NCBI GenBank assembly: GCA_002269645.1
Contig: NIVC01003974.1
Span: 1-33,114 of the forward strand
Origin: Macrostomum lignano
Lineage: Eukaryota
Direction: 5' to 3'
DNA length: 33,114 bases
Shown here: positions 4,644 through 32,755 of the stretch, in pieces
Position numbering within the stretch: the first letter of the stretch is position 1
Layout: every line of letters starts with the position of its first letter
Program-made: the position numbers and the translations under genes
Notes under the pieces: model-generated
What the model saw: the letters and a program-made list of their open reading frames with translations, nothing else
Databases searched by the model: none
What the model was told of the DNA's origin: nothing

Positions 4644-5000
4644 ATGAAAAGCCTACTGGATCACCGGCCACCAGTGTCGCGGCAAAAAATGTCCATGATC
4701 ACTAAATCGGCTATACGGGGCATCAAATTCTACAAGCACATTGTGCAAAGCGTTGAAAAGTTCATTCAAAAGTGCTCGCCAGACTACAAAGTTCCCGGCC
4801 TGTACGTCATGGACGCCATCATACGGCAGAGCCGGCATCAGTACGGCGCAGAGAGAGACGTGTTTGCGCCAAGATTTCTAAAGAATCTGCTGCCCACATT
4901 TCAACAGCTGTTTCGTTGCGACGAAAAAGACCGACCGCTGGTTGTTCGGGTATTGAATTTGTGGCTGAAAAATGAGACATTTCCGCCGGAAGTTATTCAG
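4644..5000 (+). CDS. SCAF4/SCAF8: SCAF4/SCAF8-like gene, exon encoding the CTD-interacting domain (CID)
   Basis: KFYKHIVQSVEKFIQKCSPDYKVPGLYVMDAIIRQSRHQY..DVFAPRF..VRVLNLW closely matches the SCAF4/8 CID. Acceptor TAG at 4641-4643; donor GTAATT at 5001 (phase 0). About 10 N-terminal family residues are missing, so an upstream exon is expected. Confidence 0.93.
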
Positions 5001-5096
5001 GTAATTAATTGGGACAATTCTAGGTGGGATTTATTTTGGGTTAATCTATGGAATTCCAGGGTCCTTTGAAATGTTTGGCCTTTTTCAGGGTCCTTT

Positions 5097-6006: not shown

Positions 6007-6086
6007 ATCTATGTGACCCATTCTAATTTTTATGCGCAGTACAGATGCTAATCTAACCGGTCCAATTGTTTACACTTGCCGTTTAG

Positions 6087-6506
6087 TCGCTGCTCAGTCT
6101 GGCTGACAATCCCGAGGACGCCAACCTGCTGGCTCTGGCTCAGGCCCAGGTGTCTGTGGCCATCAACAACCAGGCCACTGCCAGCTCAAGCGGCGGCAAC
6201 TCAGCTCGTCGATTGAAGCGACCGCATCATCACCACGGTCATCATCACGGGCACAGGCAGCGTCAGCATAGTAGCCAAGATTTCGTTGACAACAACGACA
6301 ATCCGATTGGCGCTGGCGTTGCTATGGAAACCATGCCTGTCGGCGACGGCGAATTCGACTACGTTGGCGACAATAGCAACGAGCCCTCTGCTGCTGAACA
6401 GGCCTCGATTGCAATGCCACAGGGTGGTATTATCAGCTCTGTAGCCGAACTGTTACAGAAATTTCAGGACAGCGATGATGTTCGCGACCAGATCAATCAG
6501 CTGCAG
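6087..6506 (+). CDS. SCAF4/SCAF8: SCAF4/SCAF8-like gene, exon with the CID end and a His-rich/acidic linker
   Basis: Acceptor TTTAG ends at 6086. In-frame SLLSLADNP continues the CID (IQ|SLLSLA versus family IQPLLDMA). Donor GTGAAT at 6507, phase 0. Confidence 0.88.
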
Positions 6507-6596
6507 GTGAATGTCCTGATCCAAAGTTTTCATCCAAGTCTTTGTAGCTAGCTATTTGCAGTTTGTTTTATCTCTATTACTTTCCTTTCAAATACT

Positions 6597-7160
6597 GCAT
6601 CTAGAGCTCCATATCTATAGAGCTGCATCTAGAGTTCCATATCTATAGAGCCGCATCTAGAGCTCCATATCTATAGAGCTGCATCTAGAGCTCCATATCT
6701 ATTGATAGCCGCATCTAGAGCTCCATATCTATAGAGCCGCATCTAGAGCTCCATATCTATTGATAGCCGCATCTAGAGCTCCATATCTATAGAGCCGCAT
6801 CTAGAGCTCCATATCTATTGATAGCCGCATCTAGAGCTCCATATCTATAGAGCTGCATCTAGAGCTCCATATCTATAGAGCTGCATCTAGAGCTCCATGT
6901 CTATAGAGCTTCATCTAGAGCTCCATATCTATAGAGCTGCATCTAGAGCTCCATATCTATAGAGCTGCATCTAGAGCTCCATATCTATAGAGCTGCATCT
7001 AGAGCTCCATATCTATAGAGCTGCATCTAGAGCTCCATATCTATAGAGCTGCATCTAGAGCTCCATATCTATAGAGCTGCATCTAGAGCTCCATATCTAT
7101 AGAGCTGCATCTAGAGCTCCATATCTATAGAGCTGCATCTAGAGCTCCATATCCACAGAG
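6597..7160. repeat. Intronic 28-bp minisatellite (GCATCTAGAGCTCCATATCTATAGAGCT), ~20 copies, with a few 30-bp variants
   Basis: Direct tandem copies inside the intron at 6507-7198. Confidence 0.97.
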
Positions 7161-7198
7161 TGAGGCTAAACGTCTATTTTTAAAAATTCCTATCGCAG

Positions 7199-8347
7199 AG
7201 TCTGCAGGAAAAGATTCTTCAGCAGAGCAGCATGCTCAGCCAGCAGCAGATGATCGACCCGGAGATCCTGGCCCAGCTGCAGGTCTTGCTGAAGGAGCTA
7301 ACCAAGACCGCTCGGGCTGCCTTTGAACGCGACCAGGAGGCCCAACGAGCCAAGGATGTGGTAGCTTACGACTACGGAGACGAGTCGGACTCGGACGACA
7401 ACGCGGGCAGCAACGGACTGCAGAGGCAGCAGAGGTCCAAATTGAATGCCGCTTATCCAGCAACCAGCGGCGGTGTTGATCAGAACTTTCTTGACCAGCT
7501 GCAACAGATGACGGATATGCTGGAGCAGACTCGAGTGCTGCAAGAGCAGCTGCAGTCGGCTATGATGCAGCAGCAGCTGGAAGAAGCTGAGCAGCAGCAG
7601 CAGCAGCAACACGAGGAGCAGTTCTACCAGCAGCAGCAGACAGCTCGGCAGCGGCTGTCCTACGAAGAAGGCGAAATTGACGAAGAGGCGTTAGCCAAAG
7701 CAGCTGTGCCTGCTGCTTCCTCTATTAATAAGCTTAGCAACTATAATGACTACGGTATTGATAACAGTGCGCCGAGGGCAGCGCGGCAGTAGAAGAGACC
7801 GGAGCCGATCGCAGTCGTCACGGGCACAGTCACGGACACAGTCATCACAGCACTCGCCATCCGGCGAGATCTCCAGCAACAGCAACAACATCGTCTAGAC
7901 GACGTCGCCGAAGTCACAGCGGCGGCGGTCGCGGCGAGAGCTCGGAGCGTCGCAGAAAAGAGCGCAAGCGTAAATCGTTGCCCCGGTTACGCAATGGTCG
8001 CCTATCGATTGTTAGCGCCACCATTTTTATTGGCAAATTGCAGAAATCCACCACGGAGGCTCGGCTCCGCTCTTTGCTAGAGGAATACGGACAAGTGCAA
8101 GCGCTTGTGCTCATCTCTTCCCGCGGCTGCGGATTTGTAGTCTATTCCAAGCGAAAGCACGCGGCCAAGGCTATTGATAAGCTGCGAAGCACTCGTCTGG
8201 ACGGCGCCAGCCTGCGAGTCGCTTGGGCGCCAAATAAAGGCATTAAAGACTCCGAATTGAAAGAGTACTGGGACGAAGAGGAGGGCTGCACTTATATACC
8301 GTACGAAAAGTTTCCTAGGGACCAGTCTTGGCGCGAACTGCTGCAAG
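7199..8347 (+). CDS. SCAF4/SCAF8: SCAF4/SCAF8-like gene, exon with the Gln-rich region, His/Arg/Ser-rich segment and RRM; contains a 1-bp frameshift near 7765-7790
   Basis: Acceptor CGCAG ends at 7198. Frame 2 is open to a TAG at 7790-7792; frame 1 is open from 7765 and gives ERRRKERKRKSLP..SATIFIGKL..RGCGFVVY..LRVAWAPNKGIK..YWDEEEGCTYIPY, the SCAF4/8 RRM signature. Donor GTGAGT at 8348, phase 1. Confidence 0.88.
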
Positions 8348-8472
8348 GTGAGTACAATTGATATTTTAGTTCGTAATAAAGGGATGTCATTAAGATCAGG
8401 AGCCGTCAAGATCGCCCAACCAAAAAAAATTTTGAATCCTAATTTTTAGCTCAATACTAACAGTGTTGTCTT

Positions 8473-9062
8473 GTCTTGTCTATGGGACTAAATTAGCATC
8501 AAAGTCTTGTCTATGGCAATAAATTAGCGTTAAAGTCTTGTCTATGGCGATAAATTAGCGGTAAAGTCTTGTCTATGGCGATAAATTAGCGGTAAAGTCT
8601 TGTCTATGGCAATAAATTAGCGTTAAAGTCTTGTCTATGGCGATAAATTAGCGTTAAAGTCTTGTCTATGGCACTAAATTAGCGTCTAAGTCTTGTCTAT
8701 GGCGATAAATTAGCGGTAAAGTCTTGTCTATGGAAATAAATTAGCGCTAAAGGCTTGTCTATGGCAATAAATTAGCGCTAAAGGCTTGTCTATGGCAATA
8801 AATTAGCGCTAAAGGCTTGTCTATGGCAATAAATTATCGCTAAAGGCTTGTCTATGGCAAAAAATTAGCGCTAAAGGCTTGTCTATGGCAATAAATTAGC
8901 GCTAAAGGCTTGTCTATGGCAATAAATTATCGCTAAAGGCTTGTCTATAGCAAAAAATTAGCGCTAAAGGCTTGTCTATGGCAATAAATTATCGCTAAAA
9001 GCTTGTCTATGGCAGTAAATTATCGCTAAAGGCTTGTCTATGGTACTAAATTAGTGCTAAAA
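8473..9062. repeat. Intronic 31-bp minisatellite (G(T/G)CTTGTCTATGGCAATAAATTAGCGYTAAA), ~19 copies
   Basis: Direct tandem copies in the intron at 8348-9627. Confidence 0.96.
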
Positions 9063-9294
9063 TCCTTGCTAAGTCACTGGTTTGGTGCTCAACGCAAGCT
9101 AGCGAGGAGGCAGCCTACTTATGTCAGTACCAACTTCAGTGTGCATCATTTTTGCTGATCCGTTAAGCATGAACACAAGATGTACAGCAGAGCCTTGACT
9201 TTCTCATCAACGTGAAGCAGTGCACACACCCTTTTGCCTTGGGGGTTGGTCCTCGTAGTGTATCGAAGTTTTACTGATTCGCAAGATAAGAAAA

Positions 9295-9545
9295 GGCGGG
9301 TTGTAGCCTGGTGGTTAGAGCATCGGACTCAACTGAAAGGTCGGGGGTTCGATTCTTAAACTACTCGGAATAATTTGGGGGTGTAGCGACCCCCTTCCCC
9401 AGTCCTTGGACTGAACAGCCGTACGCAGCCTTCAGATGCGCCGCGCAATAGCTGCGGCTGAGCTGTCGGTTGCACATCTGGCCCAATTAGGGCAGGTGTA
9501 ACCAGTTATTATATTTTTATTATTATTTAAATAATATAATGTTAA
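9295..9545 (+). mobile_element. Putative tRNA-derived SINE
   Basis: Pol III A box TAGCCTGGTGG (9304-9314) and B box GGTTCGATTC (9346-9355) at tRNA-like spacing. T-arm and anticodon arm do not pair. A ~150-bp GC-rich body and a (TTA)-like AT-rich tail follow (9506-9545). Confidence 0.72.
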
Positions 9546-9627
9546 ATGAAAAGTCGCGGGCTGGACAGCCTACTTGTGTCAGTAGTAATTTAGGAGTGCA
9601 ATTTATAGCACAATCTATCTATTCCAG

Positions 9628-10274
9628 GCGGCGCGTTCATCGATCAGGACAGCGTGCCGATTGAACTCATCGATCTGCTCCGCGATCCGGATCCGCCCGA
9701 TGCCGCCGATCAGCCGCTGGCTCCGCCACCGCCACCGCCCCCGCTGCCGCCAACCGTGAGCGGCATTGCAGCGCCAGCTTTGAACCTGCCGCCACCGCCG
9801 CCACTTCCACCGCAGCCGCCGCAACGTCCGCCGCTTCCAATGATGCCGCCGAATTTTCATGCGTTCATCCCGCCGCCGCCGATGCCGCCAACTGTGTCTT
9901 CGACGTTGACGTCCTCGACGTCAGCGGCTGCTGATCCGGCACCGCCGCCGGCTATAGTTAGTCCCACTGCTGCTGTTGCTGCGTCGAAACAGCCGCCGCA
10001 GCGAACGACGCTTCTGCCGATGCCGCCGCCGCCGCCGTCGACACAGCCGCCGCAGCAGCCGCCGCAGCAGCCGCATCAACACGTTCGAACCCCGATTCCT
10101 CCGCCTCGTCCTAGGCCGCCTCAGGGATTCTTTCGAGGTGGCATCGGCGGTGGCGGCGGCGGCATTGGTAGCGGCATTCTACGACCGCCGTTGATGCCGC
10201 CGCAGGCGCTGTTTCCTCCTCGCGGCGGCGGTATCGGCGCCTGGCGCGGCGGGATTCGACGTGGCGGATTGTGA
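9628..10274 (+). CDS. SCAF4/SCAF8: SCAF4/SCAF8-like gene, last coding exon (Pro-rich, RGG tail)
   Basis: Acceptor TTCCAG ends at 9627. The phase-1 join gives LLQG|GAFIDQDSVP, resembling family GGMIDQETV. Poly-Pro and RGG motifs run to TGA at 10272-10274. Confidence 0.88.
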
Positions 10275-11480: not shown

Positions 11481-12742
11481 CCCTCTGTAGCTGGTGCCCC
11501 CTTCTGTAACTGGCGCCCCTCTGTAGCTGGCGCCCCTCTGTAGCTGGTGCCCCCTTCTGTAACTGGCGCCCTCTGTAGCTGGTGCCCCCTTCTGTAACTG
11601 GCGCCCCTCTGTAGCTGGCGCCCTCCAGTGTAGCTGGCGCCCCCCTCTGTAGCTGGTGCCCCCTTCTGTAACTGGCGCCCCTCTGTAGCTGGCGCCCTCC
11701 AGTGTAGCTGGCGCCCCCCTCTGTAGCTGGCGCCCTCCAGTGTAGCTGGCGCCCTCTGTAGCTGGTGCCCCCTTCTGTAACTGGCGCCCCTCTGTAGCTG
11801 GCGCCCTCCAGTGTAGCTGGCGCCCCCCTCTGTAGCTGGCGCCCTCCAGTGTAGCTGGCGCCCTCTGTAGCTGGTGCCCCCTTCTGTAACTGGCGCCCCT
11901 CTGTAGCTGGTGCCCCCTTCTGTAGCTGGTGCCCCCTTCTGTAGCTGGTGCCCCCTTCTGTAGCTTGTGCCCTCTGTAGCTGGTGCCCCCTTCTGTAACT
12001 GGCGCCCCTCTGTAGCTGGCGCCCTCCAGTGTAGCTGGCGCCCCCCTCTGTAGCTGGCGCCCCTCTGTAGCTGGTGCCCCCTTCTGTAACTGGCGCCCCT
12101 CTGTAGCTGGTGCCCCCTTCTGTAACTGGCGCCCCTCTGTAGCTGGTGCCCCCTTCTGTAACTGGCGCCCCTCTGTAGCTGGTGCCCCCTTCTGTAACTG
12201 GCGCCCCTCTGTAGCTGGCGCCCTCCAGTGTAGCTGGCGCCCCCCTCTGTAGCTGGCGCCCTCCAGTGTAGCTGGCGCCCTCTGTAGCTGGTGCCCTCTG
12301 TAGCTGGTGCCCCCTTCTGTAACTGGCGCCATCTGTAGCTGGCGCCATCTGTAGCTGGCGCTCTCCAGTGTAGCTGGCGCCACCCTCTGTAGCTGGCGCC
12401 CTCCAGTGTAACTGGCGCCCCTCTGTAGCTGGCGCCCTCCAGTGTAGCTGGCGCCCCCCTCTGTAGCTGGCGCCCTCCAGTGTAGCTGGCGCCCTCTGTA
12501 GCTGGTGCCCTCTGTAGCTGGTGCCCCCTTCTGTAGCTGGTGCCCCCTTCTGTAACTGGCGCCATCTGTAGCTGGCGCCATCTGTAGCTGGCGCTCTCCA
12601 GTGTAGCTGGCGCCACCCTCTGTAGCTGGCGCCCTCCAGTGTAGCTGGCGCCCTCCAGTGTAGCTGGCGCCCTCCTCTATAGCTGGTGCCCCCTTCTGTA
12701 ACTGGTGCCCCTCTCTGTCGCTGGCGCTCCTCTGTAGCTGGC
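11481..12742. repeat. GC-rich composite minisatellite, variable 15-20-bp units with core TGTARCTGGYGCCC
   Basis: About 1.26 kb built from a few unit types (CTCTGTAGCTGGYGCCC, CTTCTGTAACTGGCGCCC, CCAGTGTAGCTGGCGCCC). All three minus frames are open, as expected for a stop-free repeat. Confidence 0.96.
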
Positions 12743-13842: not shown

Positions 13843-15858
<2,016 letters not shown>

Positions 15859-18677
15859 GAATATCTCTACATGTATTGATACTCATAGAGCTTTTCGTTA
15901 TACGAGTATTAGGATATAACGAAATTTACTCCTTCACTCCAAATTTACTCCAAGGACTACTCCTTCTACTTCAGTAGTCCTTGACTAATAGTTGAGCGCG
16001 TTTATTATTAGCTAACTTGCATCAACAACTAAAAATTGATTGACTGATTGATTGAAACCTGCGAATCGTTTCCCCCTAAAGTCAAATAGATTCCTTTCTT
16101 CCGGCAATACGACCAGAGGGCAGCACTTGAATTTGACCGATGCCACCGCGGCCACCACGTTGGTGCTCTGCTAGCCACATGCAAAGCTTGCAGCTGTTTC
16201 ATTTTTTGTCGATAAAACTTGGACCCCTGCTGCGATCGGTCAATTGCTCCTGGGCGATTTGGATCAGCACTATCGACGAGAGATATTTTCTTTCCGAAAA
16301 CTAAACGATCTAACCGGTACTCGTAAGTAAAGACACTCGGTTATTCTTTTTGATAATTTTTATACTTAGGAATTTGGAATTTACAAGCATAATTTTATTT
16401 AATTTATTCACCTGGCATAAAAAATAGTTCGATACGCGGGTTATTCTAGAAGTTTTCGAGCTCAGCCCGATCACCGAGTGCTTGCAAGACTCGCTTCGAC
16501 ACTCATCACCCTAGATTAGTTCTCTATTCAGCCTCTATATCAGACCTGCTAATTCTGATAGCTAGTTCGTCATTAGCAATGCCTGCAGTTTTTAACTTTG
16601 GATTTCTATCGGAGAAGAAAAACTTTTAACGTTGACAATCAAAAGTCATGACAAGTATTGCTTTTGTCCTGCTATGTGGAGCAGTGGGCATGCAAAACGG
16701 AACGGTCCATAAGAATTCATGGCCAAGCGGTTGAATTAACTTACAAAAGCAAACCATATATAGATAACCAGATTTTTCATGCAATATGGAACGGTACGCG
16801 ATCTGCAGCGCATCGTCGCCGCCTTGCACCGTGGACTGTCGATGAAGGGTTGTGACAGTGTTGTTAGGAGTATCCAATTTTTCTGTTCACCGCATTTGGT
16901 CAACATTCTAAAAGACAAGACGGCGCAGGTTGGAAGCTGCCACTTAATTAGCACTAGCAGACACCACTTAGCAGACAGCTGCCAACAACTGGACCCTAAG
17001 CGAAACTGGGTAGTTTTTAATTTTATGTATGGCCCGAATTTCTATCGTAGCGTACGGAGATCCCTGAGAACCATCGGAACAGAACTTCAACACGAATCCT
17101 GAAGCAGTGCATGGCACTTAAGCAGTTGAGATTCATGTTAAAAATCGAGAGAGAGGCGGCTGAAGCCGTTGGGCCACGCAATCACTGCTGGAAAGTGCGC
17201 TGGGTTGGAGCTGCCCTGCAACAGATTGTTTGAATTGTCTCTGCAGCGACATCAGTTTTGAGAGTTAATTTTTGTAAATTTTGATGCTTTCAATCTGTGA
17301 CAAAATATGCTTTATTGATTCAGTTTTTATTCTTTCTTTAAATGTGTAATAAACCACTGAAACGAGGAGATACTCTATGCAGAATCTCCGAGGCGAAGCC
17401 TCAATATTTACAATATTTCCGGACCGCAGGCTTTGGCTCTAAGTCAACAATGGTCCGCCCCTGTACTAAACTTCTACGGGCCAACCACGATCAATTTCAG
17501 TTCCCCGACAAACAAGATGCAATAGTGATAGCAATAAAAAGTTGTAGACTAACGAACTAAAACAACTATAACTGACTAAACGCTTGTTTACCGTTTTAAC
17601 GTTCAATAAATATACGTGTTCTTGTTTTACTATCAATTTTAAGTTTGTCTATGGTGGCGGAGTTAACGCTACCAATAATCTCCGCGAGCTTAACACTAGG
17701 GACATAGGCAAGGCGAACAGGCAAAGTTGATTAAATAGAACTCAAATCATTTATTCTATTCTGGCTCACCGTTCCATATTGCAAGACAAATCGGCTTATC
17801 TTATGACTTGCTTTTGTAACTTTTGTAAGTTAATTCAACCGCTTGGCCATAGAATTCTAATGGACCGTTCCGTTTTGCATGCCCGCTGTTCCGTATAGCA
17901 CGACAGAAGCTATATTATACTGAGATGTACGTTTCCATTTATTGACTTTACAAGTTCTGTATTAGTATGCTAGTAAGAATCGCAAATGCCACGTACTTGG
18001 TTGAATTTACCAAGTAAGCATAGTCGACCTATACTCAACAACATTAAAAAGTCGCCACCTTTGAGAGAGCGCAGTAAATTCTGGCTCAGTATTGACTTTT
18101 GAGTGACGCAACTTGCGCCACGCGACGCAGAGTTGGGCTGGGTGAGGAGGGATTGGGAAGAGCGGAGGGCGAAGATTGGATGGATTAAAGCTTCCGCCCG
18201 GTTTTCATTGTTTTTTAAAGCATTTTTTAATATTAAAATGGTTGTCCAGGTGATAGACACTGGTCAAAAGACACTGCCCACTGGGGCAAAGGGTAGTGAC
18301 TTTTCAATGTTGCTGAGTATATCTTTTATTAGAGACAGGGGCTGTGTGCACCCTGGCGCACTTTAAGTGACATTGTCACACAAATTTTTTCAAGTCATGC
18401 GACAAAATTGAAATTACATTTATTTCTATGAAGTTGAATTTTTGCTGCATCTCTAGCTTTTCTATCTAGCGTCGATGACGAATCTGAAATTACCAACTCG
18501 AGGCCCTGAATGAAATAATAGTTAAATGGTTTAAAAAAATAACTTAGTATTCGATAATATGGTTTTCCGTGTACATGTAATTATAATATTGGTAGCAGCT
18601 AATTATTGCATTGTATTTGACTCAATCGACAGCGCCAGTGGTTGATAGCGATAACACAAGTCGCGTTCGTTCAAAGG

Positions 18678-21600
18678 ATGCAAGGCGCCCAGCTTCTCGT
18701 TTTCGCGCTGGCACTCAGCGCCTGCCCGATGGCAAATGCCGAAGGCTTGGGCACCAAAGTGGCCAAAAAAGCGTGGGACATTGTTCAAAACAAGCTGAAC
18801 CCAAAGAGCAAGGCCGAGATGTACCAGAAAGCTGTGGACATTGTGTCGGACCACATCACCAAGTCTGCCAACAAAGCTGAGAAGCTAGCTAGTAGCTACA
18901 TGTCGGCTGTGGACAAAGACCCCGGTGCTCTCATCACCAGGGAGAGCATGAAGAAGATCATAAGTGGCAGCTCATTCCTGCCGCAGAAGGCCGGCACAAG
19001 AACGGTGTCTCTGCAGTCGGATCAAGGATTCAACGGTTTCACCAACTACCAGCCATCGGGTTGGAAGATCACCGAAACAATGAGCGGTCCTACAGATAAG
19101 AAAGAGGAGCCTTCAGAGACCAAGGAGCCCGTTTACACTTACCCGATGGGCCTCGGCCCCGTTCTGCTCAACCAGTGCACGGAGAAGAACTACGACAAGA
19201 CCAGCCCGTGCTACAACAGCAAGTTGTTCGACCTGCAAATCACGATCTGCTTGAATCAGATCGACGCAGCCAACTATATCGGGGTGGGCTTCAACGGCAG
19301 AGGCTACTACAATGCGCAGAGTAGAAGAGCCAGCCTGGTTCAAAGAAGCTGCTCAAACCGAGCAACCTTCATGGGATCGGACATTCCCGACACTATGAAC
19401 ATATTCGGCATTTTTGAAACATTCGCCGAGACTAAGTCGTTCCAGTCAGCCGATGAGTATATGCAATACATCAGACATAAGGCTGGATTATCCAACCAAA
19501 AGAACTTGTTCGCGAGCGAGGCCAGCAAATACGGCAAGGCCAGCGGAATCGGCTTTGATCTTGGAGGCGTTGGCGCTGCAGCGGGAGCTTTGATCGGCGC
19601 CAAGGCCGGCGGTCCAGCGGGAGCCGAAATGGGCGCGGGTCTGGGCGGGGCTATTGGTGGCACCATCAATGGAGGCAGCGGATCTGGGTCAGGAAACGCA
19701 AAGCAGAGCGAACGGAGCAACAGTTCGTCTGCAACCAGTCACTTCGAAGCTTCAGACAAATTTCAAAAGGCCTCGAATAATTTCTTCGCGATTATGTATG
19801 TCAACGTTATTCTGTACGAGATCAGCTTGGATGAGGTGAAGCCAACAGATCTCAGTCTAGCCCTGCTTAAGGATTACATGAGCCTGCCAGTGTCCTATTT
19901 CTCCATCGGTGCTGACGTCAAGTACCAGAACTTCCTGCTGCGTTGGGGCACGCACTTCATCCGTTCAGGAAAGTTCGGAGGCCAACTGAAAATTACGAAG
20001 AGAGCGAGATCGGATAAGGTTCAGTCAGCTCAGCAGTTTGCCAGCATTGCAGAGACCGAGTTTCAATCCATGTTTGCCACTCTGCAGTCAAAATACTCGC
20101 AGAAGGAGAGCGGAATTGCTATATTCTTCATCAACACGAAGAGCAAGGAGGTTGCGCAGAACAGCCAAGCCAAGGCAGGGTCTGAATACTCGAGCTCTAT
20201 GAGGCAGACACAGAGCCAATCGCGTCAATTTCAGCAATCTGAGTTTACCCAGACAACCGTGGAGGCTCAAGGTGGAACTCCCGAGATTGCAGAAGCTCTC
20301 GTTGACTTTTACACCCCTGCGTTCAAGCAGATTTACCACGATTGGCTGGCGTCCATTAAGGACTACGCTAAGCCGTTCGAGTTCCAGTTGAAAGCTATTG
20401 ACGTGCTGTTTAACATGAACATGAACGACCTGTTTCCGGCTGGCAACATTGACTTCGGCTGCGTCAAGGATGGAGGCGGCAAAGCGAATATTCTCATCGA
20501 GCCCAAGACGAAACTTCGCTACTATATAGATGTTCAAACTCAGTTTTCCAACTCTACTAAGATTGAGGTAAAGAAAAAAGTCTATTGCAAGTACTCTAAG
20601 CTGGACGACTTCAAGACAGATCTCGACAGGCGCAGAATCTCTTTGGAGAGGGCCATCGGGGTGTACATGGCAGAGGGGCCGTTTCCAACATCGACTTTCG
20701 AACTCAAAGGCGGTGAGCCAGGGTGCGAAGAGGCCACGCTTGGAGCACTGAGAGCGGCCAATAAGGGCAAGTCGGCTGTGCTCAAGTTCTCGGAGATGAA
20801 AAAGTACCCATTTCTTGTTACATTCGATTTACCAGAGGCAATCCCGGGCCTCATTCCGAAGCAGTCAAAGTTCAGACTCATCTACAGATCAGGCATGTGG
20901 TTTGCGACTGAGCCCACACAAACGACCATGCATCTGTACGATGGCTGCGAGATTCCAGAGTCCAAAGAGGCAAAGATCTGCTTCAGGAATATTATCATGA
21001 CTTACAATGAAGCGTCTGGATTTCTGCGCGTTGATGCGAAAGATTTCCGTGCGACGAAAGCCAGGATACCAGCTTTGCCAATCTGGCTGGCAAATTCCGT
21101 TGTTGCCAGGGTACAAAAGCTTGAAATTTCTGCAACCGCTAAGAACGATATGTATGGCGGCCGGGGTGCGGTTCCTTGCAACATCAAGTGGGTGAACTCG
21201 CATCGTCTTGACCCGCAGAAGGAAGAAAACTGCATTCACTTCACTGCCGCCACCTCAGGTGACATATTCGTCATACTTTCAGCCATTCCAAGGGACCATT
21301 CTACCTGGTACTACCTGCAGATCAATCCCGAAGGTGTTTCGTTTTACCAGGCGATGGAATTAAAACGAAGGGACACTCAGAAAGGAATGGGAATCCTTGG
21401 CGATAGCAACCTCTTTCAATCATTCTTCGTCTGTGTCGTGCAGAAGAAGGACAGAGTAACGATGCAGTACGGAAAGGCAGATCCCGTGAGCGAGGTCGGC
21501 ACCGTGTATTCGGGTTATACATTTGCACCCGACAGCCAATTCAGCCGTTTGTCATTTTATACATTCGGGTCCGGTCGCAAGCCTGTGTCATTAATGGACA

Positions 21601-23194
21601 TCCGTCTAACCCGAATGTTGCCCCAGGTGAAATGTTTGAGCAAAAACTACATCAATGTAGACGGGCACTGCGTTCTCGCGTGCCATTCGGAGTGCGATCA
21701 GTGCGATGTAGCCAGAGACAACAAGTCGTGCCGCCGGTGCAAGCACGTGCGAGTGGAGACTGGCAGCGGAAAGTTGAAAGTGACGGAGTGTTTCGCAGAA
21801 TGTCCGCCTGGAACCACCTTGAAATCGTCTAAGACTGCGACTAAGAAGACTAAGGCTAAGCCGACTGGTCTGTGCGAGAAGTGTCCGGCAGGAACCTTCA
21901 AGAGTGGCGACGGAAACCAAAAATGCAGTCCGTGTCCCAAAGGAAAAATAAGCGACGCTGGAGCCAAAAGCTGCGTAGCCTGTGAAGCCGGAACCTTCAA
22001 CGACAAGCTTGGCCAGTCGAAATGCCAGCGCTGCGCACTCGGAACCTATTCAAGCGACGGTGCGGTGAGCTGCACAAAATGCCCTGTCGGGCACTATTCC
22101 GATAGTTTAGGCCAATCATCCTGCTTGCCATGCTCTTTTGGCAGCTTTGGGAAAGTCACTGGCCTGGCAAAGTGCACCCCCTGTTCGAAAGGATATTTCG
22201 CAGACAAAAAAGGTCAATCAATTTGCTCAAAGTGTCCGGCCGGGACGTCCAGTGCCAAGGGCTCGATGACTTGCAATAACAGTTGCACGAAAGGCAAATT
22301 TAGCCCTCGAAAGGGTGAGCCGTGCAGGCCGTGTCCTCCAGGCACGTACGGCGACAGTGTGGGCTCTTCCGCTTGTTCGAAGTGCAAAAAAGGCACCTAC
22401 CAGTCAAAGTCGGGTCGAACTTCGTGCATTTCAGCACCGATTGGTCACTACGTGTCGAAGGAGGGGCCACTAAACCGTCTAAATGCGCAGCAGGATCATT
22501 TACCGCTAAAACAGGAAGCATAAAATGCCGCCCGTGCTCTCCTGGAAGCTATGCGTCATCCACCGGCTCGACCGCTTGTAAAAAATGCTCGCGCGGCTAC
22601 TTCCAGCCTTCGACAGGCCAATCGAGTTGCAAAAAAGCGAGATATCATCATTATGTTAATCAGGAAGGAGCGGTGAAGGACACCCTTGCTCTGCCGGTTA
22701 CACGGCTGCTTCCGACCGCAGATCTTGCCACAAGTGCCGTCCAGGTACCTATGGCTCGGGAACAGGTCTTGGTTGCACAGGTTGCTCATGGGGTTCCTAC
22801 TCAGGAAAATATGGAAGTTTGAGCTGCACCCCATGCCCAAAAGGCTATTATCAACCTAATCATTATGCAACTTCATGCATTCCCGCTCGGCGAGGCTATT
22901 ACATCAACCGTGTGGAATCAACATCTCCTGGCTCCCAATGCGCCCCTGGCTACTATTCTGATAAGCCGGGTCAGGCTTACTGCAAGCCTTGCCCTGCTGG
23001 ACAAAGGAGTGAGAAAACACGCGGATCGACCTCGTGCCGGTATTGCGGACCCGGTACTTATTCATCTAAATCTGGCAGCACCCAGTGCAAAAAATGTCCA
23101 TCGTCTGATTATGTCACTAATGCGGCCCGCTCTGCGTGTCACAAGTGTCCAGCCGGTTCTATCGCGCTGAGCCAGGACAGGAGAAAGTGTTTTA
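18678..23194 (+). CDS. Secreted MACPF/perforin-family multidomain protein, exon 1 (~4.5 kb): signal peptide, MACPF, FAMeT-like domain, furin-like repeat and ~26 CxxC repeats; 1-bp frameshifts near 22463 and 22683
   Basis: Signal peptide MQGAQLLVFALALSACPMANA (18678-18740). Exact MACPF signature W-G-T-H-F-x6-G-G (19944-19982), plus IGVGFN, VEAQGG, WLAS..P and LERAI..Y landmarks. The Cys-repeat register continues across frames 0, 2 and 1. Donor GTGAGC at 23195, phase 1. Confidence 0.9.
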
Positions 23195-23291
23195 GTGAGC
23201 TTTTTTACTTCATTCTGATTCGAAGTTAGTCAAGGCCCTATAAAGTTCAGTATACTTATTATTCTAAATATATAAATACCAAAACTTTCAG

Positions 23292-23561
23292 AGTTCGGCG
23301 AGTGCTACTATCCTGGTAAAGACTTTGTTAGCACAAAGGTAAACCGTGCTTATGCTGGGCCGTGCCAGTCTTGGAGCGTGAAGAGCTGCTCCAAATACAC
23401 CGAAGGAGTAAGTTGTCATACGCCAAACAAAAGGGTGCGTGAGGCTCAAGCAACGGGCAACACGTGTCGAATTATCGCCAAAGAAGGAGAAAAGAAGCCA
23501 TGGTGTTACACAAAAACAGCTACAAAATGGTCTCACTGCTCAATTCCTAGATGCGGAAAAA
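23292..23561 (+). CDS. MACPF gene exon 2: kringle-like domain 1
   Basis: Acceptor TTTCAG ends at 23291. ECYYPGKDF..GPCQSW..NTCR..KPWCYT..WSHCSIPRC is the kringle consensus. Donor GTGAGT at 23562; phase 1-1 exon of 270 nt. Confidence 0.88.
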
Positions 23562-23911
23562 GTGAGTTGCTTGAATATTGATTACACTGCAGGCTAATAA
23601 TAGAGGAAAAACAACAGGAAGGCGTGTTCCGCAATGTTCTATTTTGCGTGACTAATGAAAACCCACTGTCTGGATTTTTATGATGTTAAGGTTTGTAGTT
23701 TAGAATTGATTCAATTTTAATATTTAGCAATGATTATTAAAATTTATTGCACTAAACGGAACCTATGCCGAAATTGTGTGAGAATTAAGTGCTTTGGGAA
23801 GCTCGCACCTTGTTTGTTGTTTGAAAAAGTAAAAACTATATGAGCCTAAATGGTAGCACAACAATTGCCCGAGACACCATTTTCTGCAATGCGTAGGGAA
23901 TGAGCGTAAGA

Positions 23912-24497
23912 CTCTATGATGAATTCTATGATGAACTCTATGATGAACTCTTATGGTAAACTCTAGGGTAAACTCTATGGTAAACTCTAGGGTAAACTCT
24001 ATGGTAAACTCTAGGGTAAACTCTATGGTAAACTCTAGGGTAAACTCTATGGTAAACTCTAGGGTAAACTCTATGGTAAACTCTAGGGTAAACTCTATGG
24101 TAAACTCTATGGTGAACTCTAGGTAAACTCTATGGTAAACTCTAGGTAAACTCTATGGTAAACTCTAGGTAAACTCTATGGTAAACTCTATGGTAAACTC
24201 TATGGTAAACTCTATGGTAAACTCTATGATGGTAAACTCTATGGTGAACTCTATGATGAACTCTGTGGTAAACTGTATGGTAAACTGTATTTTAAACTCT
24301 ATGGTAAACTTTATGATAAACTGTATGGTAAACTGTATGGTAAACTGTATGGTAAACTGTATGGTAAACTGTATGGTAAACTGTATGGCGAACTCTATGG
24401 TAAACTCTATATGGTAAACTCTATGGTAAACCTTATGGTAAACTGTATTGTAAACTGTACGGTAAACTCTATGGTAAATTATGGAAAACTCTATGCT
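23912..24497. repeat. Intronic 12-bp minisatellite (ACTCTATGGTAA), ~48 copies
   Basis: Tandem units with CTCTAG/CTCTAT alternation on the left and CTGTAT variants on the right, inside the intron at 23562-24561. Confidence 0.96.
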
Positions 24498-24561
24498 AGA
24501 TTCGTTCTCATAATTGTTTTTGCAAACTACCACCGTGGATTCATGCGCTATAATATTACAG

Positions 24562-24830
24562 AACTGAAGGAGTGCTACAGACTTGGCAGCACAGATTACG
24601 TCTCGGGCATCAGCGTGACGGAGAGTGGCAAGACCTGTCAGTCATGGGAGATTCGCACCTGCCCATCTGGCACCAGCGGCAAAACCTGCCACGAGCCTAG
24701 CAGCGCAGTGAAGCGTGCTAAAAAGATTGGCAACACCTGTCGGATTGTTCCCGGCGATTCAGCCAAAAAGCCGTGGTGTTATACTACTACGAGTAAGAAG
24801 TGGGAGTATTGCAAAATTCCGCAATGCTGA
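24562..24830 (+). CDS. MACPF gene exon 3 (terminal): kringle-like domain 2
   Basis: Acceptor TTACAG ends at 24561. ECY..TDY..VTESGKTCQSW..NTCR..KPWCYT..WEYCKIPQC ends at TGA 24828-24830. Confidence 0.88.
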
Positions 24831-25674
24831 ATGATTAACCTTTACTGGAGACGGTTTATAGTTGACGACTCAAAAATCATAAAAACTGGAAATTTTCTCT
24901 TTTGGCTTTTTAGTTTTCTCTATTTATTTCGTAATTTTACCGGGTTTATTTACGAGCGTAGTTTTTTTTCAAAGGTATTATCATGTTCTTATCTATATTT
25001 AATGCTTTGCTGCCAATTCCCATAAGTTTTCCCCCTTAATAAACTGCGACGCTTGTCTAATATTCCTTTTGACTCGTCTCTAGACTGCGGTTTGAGGCTA
25101 ATTTTTCGTTGCAATATAATAAATGCAAAACAATACAATTGAGCTTTTTAATGCCTTAGATCATTTTTTCTATTATAAATACGCGGATACCTATGATGGG
25201 TACATGTACTTAGATGCAATAAAGAATTGGTTTACGCTTCATGTTTCATGCAGTTAGCTAATATCGAAGTCCAGCCACGTGACGCTGGAGAATTTTCTGC
25301 TAAGATTTGCCAGCAAATGCATTTTTCCTGCAGCGCATTTGGCAGCTAGATTCTGTCTGCATTGCCTCCCTAATGCTTAAGTAAGTAATAGATTTAGCCG
25401 ATCAAAACGTTTTGATAGTAACTGCATATCCAATTCATATTTTTGTAGGTATTCAGTTCTAATACATGCAGGAGTACATCGGTGAGCTATTAATTCATGC
25501 ATATGCCGTGGCGCTTTGTCGCCAAAATCTCTTTATTAAGACTTACGCGGTACTAGCATTAGAGGGGGGTTGCAATGCAGACAGAATCTGCTGCTGCGTG
25601 GCCAAATGCTCTGCAGAAAAAAGCATTGCGGGCAAATCTCGGCGGGCAATTCGTCTGCGGACAATTCTCGTGCT

Positions 25675-26672
25675 GGGATAACGACGTTTGCCTGCGCGAC
25701 GTTTGCCTGCGCGACGTTTGCCTGCGGGACGTTTGCCTGCGGGACGTTTGCCTGCGGGACGTTTGCCTGCGGGACGTTTGCCTGCGGGACGTTTGCCTGC
25801 GGGACGTTTGCCTGCGGGACGTTTGCCAGCCGACGTTTGCCAGCCGACGTTTGCCAGCCAACATTAAGTCAGTGAGTGAAAAAATTTGATACTGAAATTT
25901 TCGCAGTTTGTTTTTTAGCCCAACTTTTTGGCGGTTCTTCGCATGTGTAAAAGTTCGAAAACGAAATCTATACAAATCATGCAGTTCATCAATCTAACAT
26001 CTAGTTTAACAAAAAGTTCTTTGGATGTGAAAATATTATAAAGTTTACTTCTGACAGCTTTGTATCGCTTTTCCCAGTTTCTATTCCCATTTCCCAGTTC
26101 ATTGGGAGATCCAAAAGTAAGTGAATTAATTCCAATGCAGCTTGTCAAGTGCACGCTGTCATGGCCAAACTCCATTAAGCAGAGTTTGGCTTTTGAGTTA
26201 AGTATAAATAGGCGAGACTAAGCCTATACCATTATGGATGTCTCAGTCTTTTCCCATTTAGCTTGTAAACACTTAGCTTGGTTGGCCACTTGAGATGGAA
26301 AGGGCCATTCCATGGCATACATAGACATCAATTGTGACATTGGAAACTCCTATTTTGTATTTTTAGCTTTCTATTTAGGCAGACAAGATCAATTACTTCA
26401 ATAAGCCTGGACAGTAGTTTGTTAGTAAACCTGTATATTTAATAGCAGTTGTAGGGAGCAAGGTGGAATTAGATTAGTGCTATGTCCTCAGTTTTCAAAC
26501 GCAAGTACATGTAAGCCTAGAGAGGGCATTACTTCTTTAACCAATTGCCGCCTGTAAATGTCCGGTTGGCAAACGTCGGCTGGCAAATGTCCCGCTGGCA
26601 AACGTCGGCTGGCAAACGTCCCGCAGGCAAACGTCGGCTGGCAAACGTCCGGCAGGCAAACTTCGTAGACCC
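25675..26672. mobile_element. Non-autonomous foldback/MULE-like DNA transposon (998 bp) with tandem-repeat TIRs
   Basis: Perfect 8-bp TSD CTCGTGCT at 25667-25674 and 26673-26680. Termini are GGGATAACGACGTTTGCCTGC versus reverse complement GGGTCTACGAAGTTTGCCTGC. Left arm has 9 x 15-bp and 3 x 14-bp GACGTTTGCC units; right arm has 7 inverted copies (26560-26661). Confidence 0.85.
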
Positions 26673-28438: not shown

Positions 28439-29359
28439 ATTGATTCTGTAATAGTATCCACTACAAATTGATTAAATGTTCTTATGATACTACTATTAGT
28501 TCGCCGCTTGTATGTTTTGCTCCTACAGAAAGCCTGAATGAATTTATTTTTCTTCAATATTTTTAGCTGCTTCGATCGAAGTAATGTCGTGTGACTGCAT
28601 AATACTTCTGTACAGAAATTCGCGAACTATACGCTACTCACTACTACTTACTGATGGTAATGTTGTGACAGTAGAGCTCATATTTTACTGCCGCGAGTCA
28701 GTTACGAAATCGAGCAAACTTTTTGTAATTATGTTTTGTGCGAATCAATATAGTCGAGCATGGACTCGAACCCGGATAGAGAAGTCAACTGATCGAGGTC
28801 AAAGCCCCTCTCTTAAGTGTCAAGTTTAAATGTGTCAAGCACTTTTGTCTCCTTAGGTTCCAACGTATTTCTCAGCTATCATGCATAAATTCAAATGAGA
28901 AGCAGACGCGAAAAAAGCAGAAAGCAGGAAAGCTTACGAGCTATCAACAAAGAAAGCCTCGCCAATCTAAGTAATTCTTAATTATTTACTTAGCATAGTA
29001 GCCATTATATCATAAACGTGCATGTAAATAACGTATAGCATAGAGGACGCTTGTGAAGATAAATTACATGCATGCGTATCTTTCGCGTAGCTATACAGGT
29101 AAATGCCTATGTGCAAACCTGTGCAAACAAAAAACAATAGTTGGATGGTACGAGCGAATCTTTACAGTAGTTTATTGCAACTTTATGAGCCTGGAACCTT
29201 TCGAAACCTGGCAACTTAAAGCAGCACCTCATGCTTTCGAAGGTACTAGAACCTGGCCTGACAGTTGGAGTTGTATCGACGCCGCAACGGAGGTTGCTTG
29301 GATGCATGGGATTCAAGATGCTGATGCTGAATGCAAGCGTCAGAAGATTACAAGCATTA

Positions 29360-30100
29360 GAACGCAGTCCACCGAATTGATTGCGAAAGCTGCAGTCCGC
29401 AGGCGCCGCTGCCGTTGCCGTTGTACGCGTCGCATTCTTCGGTTGCGATAAACTGATTAGCACCACCGGACGAAGCTCTCGTCAGCTGACCGCAGCTACC
29501 CAGCGACGGCGGCGGCGGTGGCGGAGGCGGCGAGCGCTTTTTTCGACAGCAGCCGCTGTCCAGGCAGCGCTGGAAGGCCGGCTGGCCGTCTGCGTCGCAT
29601 AGCAGGAATGCGGTTGGAGCGAATCCTTCCACACCATCGCTAAGGCGGCGGACCCGCAGCCAATCTGGCCGACGCTCGCTGCAGTCGATGGCCAGTATTT
29701 TCTCTTCGGCTGACAGGGCCAGCTCGTCCGGGCTATTGGGCGACGGCGAATAGGCGAATACGACTGTGAAGGCGAGGCCGCGGCACGGACGGCGGTGTGG
29801 GTTCTGCAGGAGCGTCTGCTGCTGCATCTGCTGCTCGATCTGTAAATCAATGCCAAGGCCTGAGTCTTCGCGACTGCAGCAGGTGCCGAGAGACGCTGCG
29901 GGACGTAACGGATGCGTCGCAGCCGCAGGCTGGTTGAGCCGCTGCTGCTGGGTGAGGCACTGCTTGAATTGCTGGAGCTGGTTGGGTTGCTGTTGTTGTC
30001 TGGTTTTTTGGTGCTGGTCCTGGTTAGGCCGCTGCAGGTGACGGTGCTGTGGATGAAGCGGCTGCTGATTTTGCTTGAACAGTCGAATATGCATGTATTT
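29360..30100 (-). CDS. Gln-rich, SH3-domain, poly-Pro protein (exon; 5' boundary uncertain)
   Basis: FTVVFAYSP..PDELALSAEEKILAID..DWLRVRRLSDGVEGFAPTAFL fits the SH3 pattern (about 29590-29770). It is preceded by a Gln-rich tract and followed by PPPPPPPP. GC-rich coding-like composition; stop at 29357-29359. Confidence 0.75.
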
Positions 30101-32145
30101 ATAGCCACACTTCATGCATGCATGTAGTACACGTACCGTTTCACTTGAAGCAGGCTGTAGCGACTCGCTCGATGCGCCCTTAGTTTTATTTGAATGTTTC
30201 ACAAACAAATTCATTTCAACAAAATAATAACTGTAATCCTCTAATTCTAAATACGAGCTGAATTTTGATTTTTAACTCAACAATATGCTGTCAACCCCGG
30301 AAATCAAGCTATCCAAGATTCACTGTGGAATGGTGCTTCACATTTCAAACATTCCAAGCCTGTTGCATTTATAATATAAGAATGTTTTTCTTCTTCCAGT
30401 GAGGCTGCGAAGCAAGAGGTAGAATTTGTTTTGCTTGCTGCTGGAGTTCATTCTACACTGTAGCGAGTCTGCATGGTTGGCTGGCTTTTTGAAATGCTTC
30501 TGTGTCAAGAGCGACAGATAATGCAGAGCCATGCAGTTAAGAGACTTGAGAGAGTCATTCCATAGGCGGGTTTGTCAATTTGTTTGTCAAAGCTGAACCA
30601 ACATGAGCAGTAAAAACTGATGGCAACAGAGGCCGCTCTTGCTGTAGTGGCTGCAGCAAATGCTCAATTCAACTGTGTCACTACTCAGAATTATGTAGCT
30701 AGACATTTGCACTGGTTCAGTGTGTGTTGCTTACAGCCAATTTATTAATTTTTACTGACACTTCAGTATATCTATAAAGCATGGTGAGGCTTGAGTCGCT
30801 TCACCATTCCACAACTACAGCACTGTCATAAAGTTTTTATGACGAAAAATGCAGAACACCTTTCTCTTTTTTACGGCTAACAATATATGCAGTAGAAAAG
30901 AACAAAATTTTAAAGAAGTCTTCTCTATGAAGGCAGAGACCCCACAGTCTCCCAGTCGATGCAAATGTACAGCCGAGCTCCCCATGAGCTCAAATTTTTT
31001 TCTAGCATAGATTGTTGGTTGATTTTTCAGTGAATTGTACAGTGAAGCAGTCAATTGTTCTCTCTCCGGATTTTACTTTCCTTTGCTAAGCTCAAAATAG
31101 CTAGTAGTGGCTTGCGTAAAATGACATATACACTCGTAAATCGTTAATACGACCTTAAATGCGCCGACCCGACTTGTTCCTGCCAATTTTTTTTCCAAAA
31201 GTCAAACTTGAGCAGAATTAGTTTGTGCTTTTGTTGTATCCCACATATACACTTGTAACGATTGAAGTACTGGTGCAGTATTTTTAAATCCTGATTTAAA
31301 AAAAGTAAAATATTATCCGTTTTTTAGATTACTTTTTTCTCCAGTGGCCAGTTATCAAAGATTTTGTATCTGAGCGTTTTATTCACTTTACTAACGGTAA
31401 ACAACTATCTACTCTACGATTTGCATGAAAAGCTTTAATCATTTTCACTAATGGAAAAATAACTGCAAGAAAAAAGCATCACATATCAACTGTTTTAGGG
31501 TCGAACACATGATGGTCATGGTTATTAGATTATATTTAACAAACAACATATCAACGACTGTTAAATTTGAAACCTTCTAATCAAAAACAAGCAGTAAGTT
31601 TTCTGTCAATAAAATGTACTAAAAATACCAAATATATGCTAACACTGCGAAGCTAAATAAATATATACTTGCGAGTTGCGGCTTTAAAGAAACGAAACTT
31701 TTAGGTAAAACGTTTTAACATTTGTACAGCATGTAAAGTTCTATACAGGACAACAATAATCAATGAATAACGTATGGAATTTTAGCTACGAAACGTAGGC
31801 GGTAGGCATCCAAAGGGGCTATTGTTTAAGTAGAACCAATCTATTGAGTTTTTATTTATTATGGATGGGTAATTGGCAGCCGCTTATGCATATCAAGTGT
31901 TCGAATGACTTTTTTCTAGCAAAAATATATTGAATTTTACAAACAATTTGATTCTCTGCATGTCCGTGCCTAGCCCGGGTGGGTAAATTGGATAAATGTT
32001 TTTGATTTTTAGTTTCTTGGCTTTTGCCATGTTAAAAATATTTGATATGTGAGAGCATTGTTGCTTTTAATTGATTTTTTCAAAGATTATCTAAATAACA
32101 TCCCAAATCCGCTTTTTTAGCTGAAGCCTGAAAAGATTTAACAAT

Positions 32146-32204: not shown

Positions 32205-32755
32205 CTTAGTTAAGTTTGGCCTGGGTGAGAATTATCGATTGGCTAGTCAAGCTCCGGTGGGGCCTGACTTTTAATCGTTTTAAAAAAACGTCGGCCGCTC
32301 ACCGTCCCCCGCCTAGGCTCTTTTTTATGACATTAACGTTTAAATTAATAGCCTTGCAGTGGGTTTGGTCTGGTTGAACATTATCGATTTTTTGGTTAGC
32401 CGCAGTTCAGACCGGGCCTGACTTTTAATCGTTTTAAAAAAACGTCGGCCGCCCACCGTCCCCCCGCCCTAGGCTTTTTATGACATTAACGTTTAAATTA
32501 ATAATAGCCTTGCAGTGGGTTTGGTCTGGTTGAACATTATCGATTTTTGGTTAGCCCTGCAGTTCAGACCGGGCCTGACTGTTAATCGTTTTAAAAAAAC
32601 GTCGGCCGCCCACCGTCCCCCCGCCCTAGGCTTTTTATGACATTAACGTTTAAATTAATAATAGCCTTGCAGTGGGTTTGGTCTGGCTGAACATTATCGA
32701 TTTTTGGTTAGCCTGCAGTTCAGACCGGGCCTGACTGTTAATCGTTTTAAAAAAC
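32205..32755. repeat. ~155-bp satellite-like tandem repeat, ~3.5 copies
   Basis: GGGCCTGACT recurs at 32261, 32414, 32571 and 32727 (periods 153, 157, 156). A degenerate copy may extend to about 32870. Confidence 0.93.

Follow-up and report, generated by a model that had tools for sequence, protein, structure and literature searches.

A secreted Macrostomum lignano MACPF protein with a cysteine-rich stalk and two terminal kringles

Animal immunity relies on MACPF proteins as its main pore-forming weapons, and their accessory domains set how targets are found. Perforin docks on membranes through an adjacent beta-sandwich, the C2 domain, and Pomacea perivitellin-2 is a two-chain AB toxin in which a MACPF chain is partnered by a tachylectin chain. 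Described here is a gene of the flatworm Macrostomum lignano that joins a MACPF domain to a long cysteine-rich stalk and two C-terminal kringles. The coding region lies at 18678-24830 on the + strand of a 33,114-nt stretch of DNA, referred to below as the window, which is a whole contig (NIVC01003974.1) of the Mlig_3_7 assembly (GCA_002269645.1). The protein is a 1,685-aa secreted, soluble, multidomain MACPF product of one of two Mlig027585 copies. The identity of the gene, its architecture and its family placement are strongly supported, and the best overall explanation, favoured by a little more than doubt, is a kringle-tailed MACPF family member that acts as a secreted pore-forming effector.

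Complement C6, C7, C8alpha and C9 and perforin-1 are likewise secreted, share the same MACPF signature and have small disulfide-rich flanking modules, but sequence likeness to the window protein is restricted to the signature region, and none of them has its post-MACPF region, stalk or kringles. When the family profile was compared with the PDB, the nearest matches were C8alpha (E 1.6e-4), C6 (9e-4), C9 (1e-3) and perforin (0.014), with the insecticidal protein GNIP1Aa also among the nearest. Membership of the complement C6-C9 group was rejected, the TSP1, LDLa and EGF modules not being found by Pfam in the window protein; Sushi and C2 modules were not found by Pfam either. Perivitellin-2 is alike in concept, combining a MACPF pore-former with a separate target-selecting recognition module, but the window protein is single-chain, with a long rigid stalk between head and kringles.

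MPEG1 (perforin-2) is an ancient invertebrate MACPF immune effector, multicopy in M. lignano (thirteen copies reported; PMC10781884), and is defined by a MACPF domain, a P2 domain, a transmembrane helix and a short cytosolic tail. The window protein was rejected as a member, having no hydrophobic span after its signal peptide, and the family profile has no MPEG1 match in the PDB at E<=1. The MACPF literature found for M. lignano concerns MPEG1, whose defining features the window protein lacks. At the other end of the molecule the comparison is with plasminogen, apolipoprotein(a), HGF and the flatworm kringle protein Tmed-krg1, which has been proposed to bind Lys-rich adhesive proteins and has homologues reported in M. 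lignano (PMC9229212). The six canonical kringle cysteines are common to all, but the window kringles have two extra inner-loop cysteines and a replaced Asp55, and the window protein is without a protease, PAN or transmembrane part.

Gene architecture and family membership

Splicing was traced directly in the sequence and gave a three-exon gene. The first ATG, at 18678, lies in an open reading frame (ORF) of 1,293 codons (18642-22523) that is carried on in two further frames by the ORFs 22322-22822 and 22819-23229. Restoring one base at each of the two frameshifts produces a protein of 1,685 aa with a single terminal stop; the length of about 1,685 aa given in the initial annotation was borne out by this repair and by an intact product annotated at a sister locus. 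The parts follow in the order signal peptide, helical Lys-rich N-terminal region, MACPF domain, family region of ~450 aa, disulfide-laddered stalk and two plasminogen-type kringles. The features are as follows.

18678-23194, +: exon 1 (4.5 kb), start codon through cysteine-rich stalk; GTGAGC donor; same junction in the annotated sister product (P0133)
18678-18743, +: signal peptide, aa 1-22, MQGAQLLVFALALSACPMANA followed by EG; hydrophobic core and A-N-A cleavage motif evident in the sequence; the sole strongly hydrophobic N-terminal window
19260-20447, +: MACPF domain, ~aa 195-590; Pfam PF01823 match at aa 349-581 (19722-20420)
19545-19700, +: glycine-zipper-like insertion in TMH1, aa 290-341 (~50 aa, Gly/Ala-rich); 12 GxxxG motifs; marginal match to Pfam Gly-zipper_YMGG, E 0.15
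19944-19982, +: MACPF signature WGTHFIRSGKFGG, aa 423-435; exact W-G-T-H-F-x6-G-G
20448-21629, +: conserved, family-defining post-MACPF region, aa 591-984; without a Pfam model, defined by alignment A1
21162-21614, +: predicted beta-sandwich, ~aa 829-979 (~150 aa); AlphaFold2 (AF2) and Foldseek
21630-21812, +: furin-like cysteine-rich repeat, aa 985-1045; cysteines nearly invariant, weak matches only
21813-23194, +: stalk of Ephrin_rec_like (TNFR-like) repeats, aa 1046-1506 (~460 aa); Pfam PF07699, E 1e-30
22463-22466, +: frameshift 1, window GGGG against GGGGG in the sister; three-frame translation of 22380-22900 and copy alignment
22683/22684, +: frameshift 2, one G absent; window ACACCC against ACACGCC in the sister
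23195-23291, +: intron 1, 97 nt, GT..AG, phase 1
23292-23561, +: exon 2, kringle 1; TTTCAG acceptor, GTGAGT donor
23562-24561, +: intron 2, 1,000 nt, GT..AG, phase 1
24562-24830, +: exon 3, kringle 2; TTACAG acceptor; TGA stop at 24828-24830
25038-25043, +: AATAAA, the first past the stop codon; candidate poly(A) signal by motif match alone

The N-terminus reads as the signal peptide that had been proposed for it, with its hydrophobic core and A-N-A motif, and hydrophobicity windows over the whole protein revealed no other stretch of membrane-span grade, in agreement with the claim that a C-terminal transmembrane segment is lacking. By these sequence features the protein is secreted and soluble. 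The MACPF domain is recognised by Pfam PF01823 at E 1e-15 (58.5-59 bits against a cut-off of 21.5). Its start, 'GVGFNGRGYY', precedes a first helical cluster of unusual length, and the exact signature noted in the initial annotation was found at aa 423-435; across the family alignment G424, T425, H426, G434 and G435 are invariant and W423 is nearly so. The glycine-zipper-like insertion occurs in three Macrostomum paralogue groups, is shorter in amphioxus and Owenia and is absent from cnidarian members.

The part that follows the MACPF domain defines the family. Alignment A1, of the post-MACPF region with the furin-like repeat, has 50 invariant columns, Cys, Trp and Gly among them. An AF2 model of aa 530-1045 built on 11 sequences (mean pLDDT 65, with blocks at 80-88) contains a small beta-rich domain at ~aa 699-819, the sandwich at ~829-979 and a terminal cysteine-rich repeat. 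When the sandwich was compared with the PDB by Foldseek, galectins came top (E 8e-4, target TM-score 0.57-0.63) and LamG domains (agrin, SHBG) lower, and the model reads as a concanavalin/galectin-like (LamG-like) fold adjoining the MACPF domain. Its placement, where perforin has C2 and MPEG1 has P2, marks it as a candidate docking domain. A FAMeT-like domain (Methyltransf_FA, PF12248) had been suggested for this part of the protein and was rejected: aa 767-1090 had no Pfam match even at E<=10, one of 11 homologues reached E 0.12, and the region models as the galectin/LamG-like sandwich. The furin-like label that had been attached to the next repeat was not confirmed either, all matches being marginal: GF_recep_IV at E 0.036, the Fu repeats of R-spondin-2 at E 0.035 with the family profile, and, for the Lingula homologue, Pfam Furin-like at E 4.8e-4 (20.5 bits against a cut-off of 26.8).

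The stalk was matched by PF07699 in six stretches of the long ORF, with further matches in both downstream frames. It is built of units of ~17 aa and longer variant units and consists of 15% Ser, 12% Gly, 10.9% Lys and 10% Cys, which upholds its earlier description as Lys-rich. The proposed count of ~26 CxxC repeats holds in part, as there are roughly 26 units if variant half-units are counted, but 21 CxxC motifs proper, 19 of them in the stalk and two in the furin-like part. The CxxC stalk is present as claimed, but it is a known Ephrin_rec_like/TNFR-like repeat that is already joined to the MACPF core in amphioxus.

Each of the two small downstream exons encodes a kringle, as had been predicted; the inner loop adds two cysteines to the six canonical ones, for a total of eight per kringle. 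Kringle 2 scores 41 bits with PF00051 (cut-off 34.3) and the two kringles together 58.4 bits, while a two-kringle query matched plasminogen in the PDB at E 1e-31 with about 35% identity. In the lysine-binding site W62, Y64, K71 (for R71) and W72 are kept, and position 57 is acidic (Asp or Glu). With one kringle per downstream exon and phase-1 introns, the 3' part of the gene has the classic layout of shuffled modules.

Relatives of the protein were found within and beyond Macrostomum. The N-terminal 1,052 aa match other M. lignano proteins, and the Mlig022132 paralogue group includes a product of 1,678 aa with 59% identity along its full length, the same order of parts and two kringle exons, and with a first intron of ~3 kb against 97 nt in the window gene. 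Three other Macrostomum paralogues (P0003/4/5) are alike up to the stalk, after which they carry a ~140-aa domain with an RxDCC motif; around this motif the domain has a weak match to F-type lectin (FBP32) at E 0.24. Branchiostoma, Owenia and Oculina proteins are 31-34% identical over ~1,000 aa (from ~aa 50 to ~aa 1045), and across the wider set of family examples the range is 31-36%.

As a word-index profile search added just 3 proteins, the post-MACPF profile was used in an exhaustive search of 1.84 billion representative proteins. It gave 418 matches at E<=1e-3 and 101 representative clusters at E<=1e-30; independent members scored 550-650 bits, and the window protein, itself a member of the profile's input, 777 bits. 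Named members come from Branchiostoma (many; for example XP_035696659.1, XP_078657439.1 and C3ZKF3), Glandiceps (XP_077985079.1), Lingula (XP_013392189.1), Nematostella (A7S0A0), Oculina (ACROYT_G007668), Owenia and Macrostomum, under labels such as 'uncharacterized protein' or 'MACPF domain-containing protein', and no vertebrate, fly or nematode protein was among the named members retrieved. Shared throughout this unnamed family are an N-terminal 'YPMGLGPVLMNGC...PCY' motif, the MACPF domain, the ~450-aa post-MACPF region with its beta-sandwich and the furin-like repeat. Beyond these the relatives vary: their tails are drawn from SRCR, F5/8C, SUEL, C-type lectin, CUB, HYR, Sushi, EGF and chitin-binding modules, Ephrin_rec_like repeats being present in some and absent from others, and the stalk is longer in the window protein than in them. 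Kringles are confined to two Macrostomum clusters among the ~160 family proteins retrieved.

Sequence comparison, then, assigns the first ~1,045 aa to an ancient, as yet unnamed MACPF family of eumetazoans, whose C-terminal modules have been exchanged repeatedly, the kringle tail being the Macrostomum version of an exchangeable end. The suggestion that the protein represents a free-standing, lineage-specific system is contradicted by this membership. Its architecture had also been called unfamiliar, which stands insofar as the literature search found no description of a MACPF-kringle protein and the domain search found kringles, among the family proteins retrieved, in those of Macrostomum only; what does not stand is its novelty as a whole, for it joins two recurring cassettes, and the kringle end alone is particular to Macrostomum. 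Searches of the literature, and of full text by gene identifier, likewise returned no published description of the family or of the gene identifiers, the protein itself being already present in GenBank and UniProt as a hypothetical protein with the same Pfam domains.

The second cassette, a stalk with terminal kringle and no MACPF domain, was found in a Bolinopsis microptera protein named 'major surface trophozoite antigen 11-like' and in four metagenome proteins (P0013, P0031, P0061 and P0108). In these, 8-13 Ephrin_rec_like repeats are followed by one or two C-terminal kringles, at 29-32% identity. The occurrence of stalk-kringle cassettes with and without MACPF would imply either a common origin or repeated joining.

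Three database entries appear to be misassigned, misnamed or chimeric. A 405-aa protein from a 1,250-bp contig (P0141), labelled 'MAG: MAC/perforin domain-containing protein, partial [Kangiellaceae bacterium]', is 56% identical to the post-MACPF region, and its contig is most likely a eukaryotic (flatworm-like) sequence mis-binned into a bacterial genome. A Branchiostoma lanceolatum family member (P0149) is named 'SCUBE3', presumably from its cysteine-rich repeats. The M. lignano entry A0A1I8JDZ1 (P0165; 1,383 aa, 'RNase H domain-containing protein') contains the family's post-MACPF region at 836-1148, which suggests a fusion with a transposon ORF.

Proposed function and its alternatives

A mechanism can be proposed in which the secreted protein is captured on, or tethered to, a protein or glycan ligand by way of its distal kringles and perhaps its stalk, the ligand being located either on a target surface or in the Lys-rich extracellular matrix or mucus of the worm itself. 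The beta-sandwich beside the MACPF domain would serve as a membrane-proximal ancillary domain, like perforin C2 or MPEG1 P2, its modelled position suggesting a membrane- or glycan-docking role. The MACPF domain would oligomerise and its two helical clusters would unfurl into a beta-barrel pore, in antimicrobial or anti-predator/anti-prey defence. On sequence grounds a pore-forming effector function, taken by itself, is a serious possibility that falls somewhat short of even confidence, and the idea that the kringles form the target-recognition end is more tentative still. The lectin- and scavenger-type tails of relatives fit, by analogy, a tail that recognises or tethers. Tethering to the worm's own Lys-rich secretions may be as plausible as target recognition, given that Lys-rich adhesive proteins are the ligands proposed for flatworm kringles (PMC9229212).

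Several observations weigh against a kringle-guided pore-former. The AF2 model of aa 1-600, from a 10-sequence alignment, has a pLDDT of 38; its strand-helix order fits MACPF topology, but the fold and the two helical clusters are consequently deduced from sequence only. These clusters (TMH1, TMH2) are polar, with a weak beta-amphipathic periodicity that is near the protein's 95th percentile and not distinctive. In the kringles, Asp55 of the lysine-binding D-x-D/E pair has given way to Ala in kringle 1 and to Pro in kringle 2. A stalk of ~460 aa is geometrically awkward if the kringles and the head engage the same membrane; a sequence of capture then docking, or an anchored defensive layer, fits its length better. 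Several animal MACPF proteins (Torso-like, BRINPs) are not known to have pore activity, and the membrane interaction of astrotactin-2 is unresolved. Lastly, the gene was not found in the searchable supplements of M. lignano papers, in which expression data were sought, nor in full text by identifier.

The protein may instead be a non-lytic extracellular MACPF protein with a role in matrix, adhesion or signalling, as suggested for Torso-like, the BRINPs and the astrotactins; this is the chief rival to the pore-forming explanation, judged less probable than it. The MACPF core would then be a scaffold or membrane-binding module, with protein binding, for example to Lys-rich flatworm secretions, left to the stalk and kringles. 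Such a role is in keeping with the polar, weakly amphipathic helical clusters, with the prevalence of Kringle, Ephrin_rec_like, CUB, Sushi, HYR and EGF modules in matrix and cell-surface proteins, and with the Lys-rich adhesive-protein binding proposed for Tmed-krg1, which has M. lignano homologues (PMC9229212); the pore, moreover, is a prediction from sequence. It accords less well with an exact MACPF signature whose glycines are invariant across the family, with helical clusters that are both long enough for hairpins, with relatives' tails that are mostly of the lectin or scavenger type used in pattern recognition (SRCR, C-type lectin, SUEL, F5/8C), and with the expansion of the family in amphioxus, a pattern that would be typical of immune effectors.

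A more far-reaching version of the pore-forming explanation is offered tentatively. The ~1,045-aa core might mark out an ancient and so far overlooked class of giant secreted 'modular perforins' that occurs in cnidarians, lophotrochozoans and invertebrate deuterostomes and is equipped with exchangeable recognition modules, among which kringles were recruited in Macrostomum. Such proteins would combine a fixed pore-forming head and galectin-like docking domain with a rigid cysteine-rich stalk and freely swapped recognition modules, and the Macrostomum kringles would steer the pore-former either to Lys-rich protein surfaces of the target or to the worm's secreted matrix, where it would form an immobilised defensive layer. 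The family can be regarded as a natural re-targeting experiment, in which one head has had its tails swapped for lectins, scavenger-receptor domains or kringles, and a conserved unnamed family with shuffled recognition tails is of more interest than the window locus alone. Should the Macrostomum protein form pores, it would be the first kringle-guided MACPF, would add an accessory fold beside the MACPF domain and would make an immune effector open to study in a flatworm amenable to transgenesis and RNAi.

The sister locus and the two frameshifts

The window gene has a near-identical duplicate. A sister locus, ~98% identical, lies on the 125-kb contig NIVC01001028.1 of the same assembly, and the two contigs are collinear over ~23 kb at 92-99% identity, the sister sharing the upstream CID/RRM gene as well as the three exons. 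Its intact 1,685-aa product, PAA73168.1 (P0133, BOX15_Mlig027585g1), differs from the repaired window protein at 5 residues, every one of them upstream of frameshift 1. Three members make up the window protein's 90% identity cluster: PAA73168.1; P0132, the annotated product of the window contig, which is 1,281 aa long and ends just past frameshift 1; and the UniProt entry A0A1I8J970 (P0001, 1,296 aa), which skips the frameshifts via false introns within 22100-23300 of the window. The last has thereby lost ~390 aa of stalk and part of kringle 1, so that the number of repeats is under-reported. In this assembly a near-identical duplicate with one-base indels thus generates truncated or misspliced models, and without the sister locus P0132 and A0A1I8J970 could pass for different architectures.

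Between the copies, 21 of 5,056 exon bases differ (0.4%), against 31 of 1,245 non-coding bases (2.5%), and the two frameshifts are the only coding indels. Intron 2 contains a minisatellite of a 12-bp unit (23906-24495, ~49 copies) whose array is of unequal length in the two gene copies. Sixteen of the 21 coding differences are synonymous (P = 2e-7 under neutrality), as are all seven past frameshift 1 when read in the repaired frame (P = 3e-5); the bases particular to the window contig include 22409 G, 22450 A, 22645 T and 22698 T. These substitutions indicate that the coding sequence is under purifying selection. Since all seven downstream substitutions are synonymous, the frameshifts either reflect assembly errors or arose very recently.

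Among PacBio consensus errors one-base deletions are the most frequent, and frameshift 1 is a homopolymer undercall of the kind typical of PacBio. The assembly was made from PacBio reads with Canu and polished with Pilon, and only 64% of its bases are error-free by REAPR (PMC5730564). The deletions in the window are thus probably uncorrected errors in a short duplicate contig. Two points weigh on the other side: frameshift 2 lies outside any homopolymer, which is less typical of PacBio error, and some of the synonymous changes may belong to the sister lineage, which would weaken the selection argument for the window copy. A word-index homologue search with the C-terminal 485 aa, whose matches were plasminogens and proteins with stalk and kringles, retrieved no independent copy that spans the frameshifts.

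It is less probable, though by no means far-fetched, that the window copy is a genuine and very recent pseudogene of a redundant duplicate, with the sister locus as the working gene. Redundancy is high in this genome, in which duplicated blocks at >=95% identity total 180 Mb (PMC5730564), and a pseudogene would account for two independent one-base deletions in exon 1, the second of them not in a homopolymer, that persist despite Pilon polishing, and for an annotated product on the window's own contig truncated at 1,281 aa. Yet just two indels occur in 5,056 coding bases, no stop codon has appeared, all splice sites are intact and the downstream substitutions are uniformly synonymous. Both deletions are, moreover, of the commonest PacBio class, in an assembly with no more than 64% of bases error-free, and polishing would be unreliable where reads map to both of two ~98% identical copies.

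That the kringle exons might form a separate downstream gene, with the MACPF protein stopping at the stalk, is very improbable: the kringles do sit on separate exons, 97 nt and 1 kb past a very long single exon, but exon 1 has no in-frame stop ahead of its GTGAGC donor, both introns are phase 1, the frame is open to the stop directly after kringle 2, and annotation gives three exons in this arrangement both at the sister locus and in the 59% identical paralogue, whose intron length differs, both models coming from RNA-seq-guided assembly. M. lignano gene models were built from RNA-seq and transcriptome mapping (PMC5730564). Because the annotated intact product of the sister locus has identical exon junctions, the three-exon architecture is real, transcript-supported at that locus and no artefact of gene prediction.

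Neighbourhood of the gene

Upstream of the MACPF gene, at 4644-10274 (+), lies a gene with a CID domain (E 1e-22) and an RRM (E 2e-13), like SCAF4/8, which also flanks the sister locus. Minisatellites are located between its coding ORFs, with a 28-bp unit at 5098-6004 and at 6595-7160 and a 31-bp unit at 8475-9061. It is followed by a GC-rich minisatellite at 11481-12742 (19/36-bp unit, ~70 copies), which gives rise to long spurious minus-strand ORFs in three frames and is unlike the sister contig's array in length and sequence. A degenerate retrotransposon fragment occupies 13941-15757 (-); one ORF has a weak RVT_1 match (E 1.3e-5, below cut-off), the neighbouring ORFs have no match, and the sister locus also has the fragment, at 98.7% identity.

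Downstream of the gene, 14-15-bp repeat arrays at 25683-25855 and 26556-26665, ~700 bp apart, are apparent reverse complements of one another with the common core GGCAAACGTC. The ORF at 29357-30214 (-), in which Gln/Pro-rich flanks accompany a weak SH3 match (E 2e-4), probably represents an exon of an adjacent minus-strand gene, and a 157-bp tandem repeat is found at 32260-32754.

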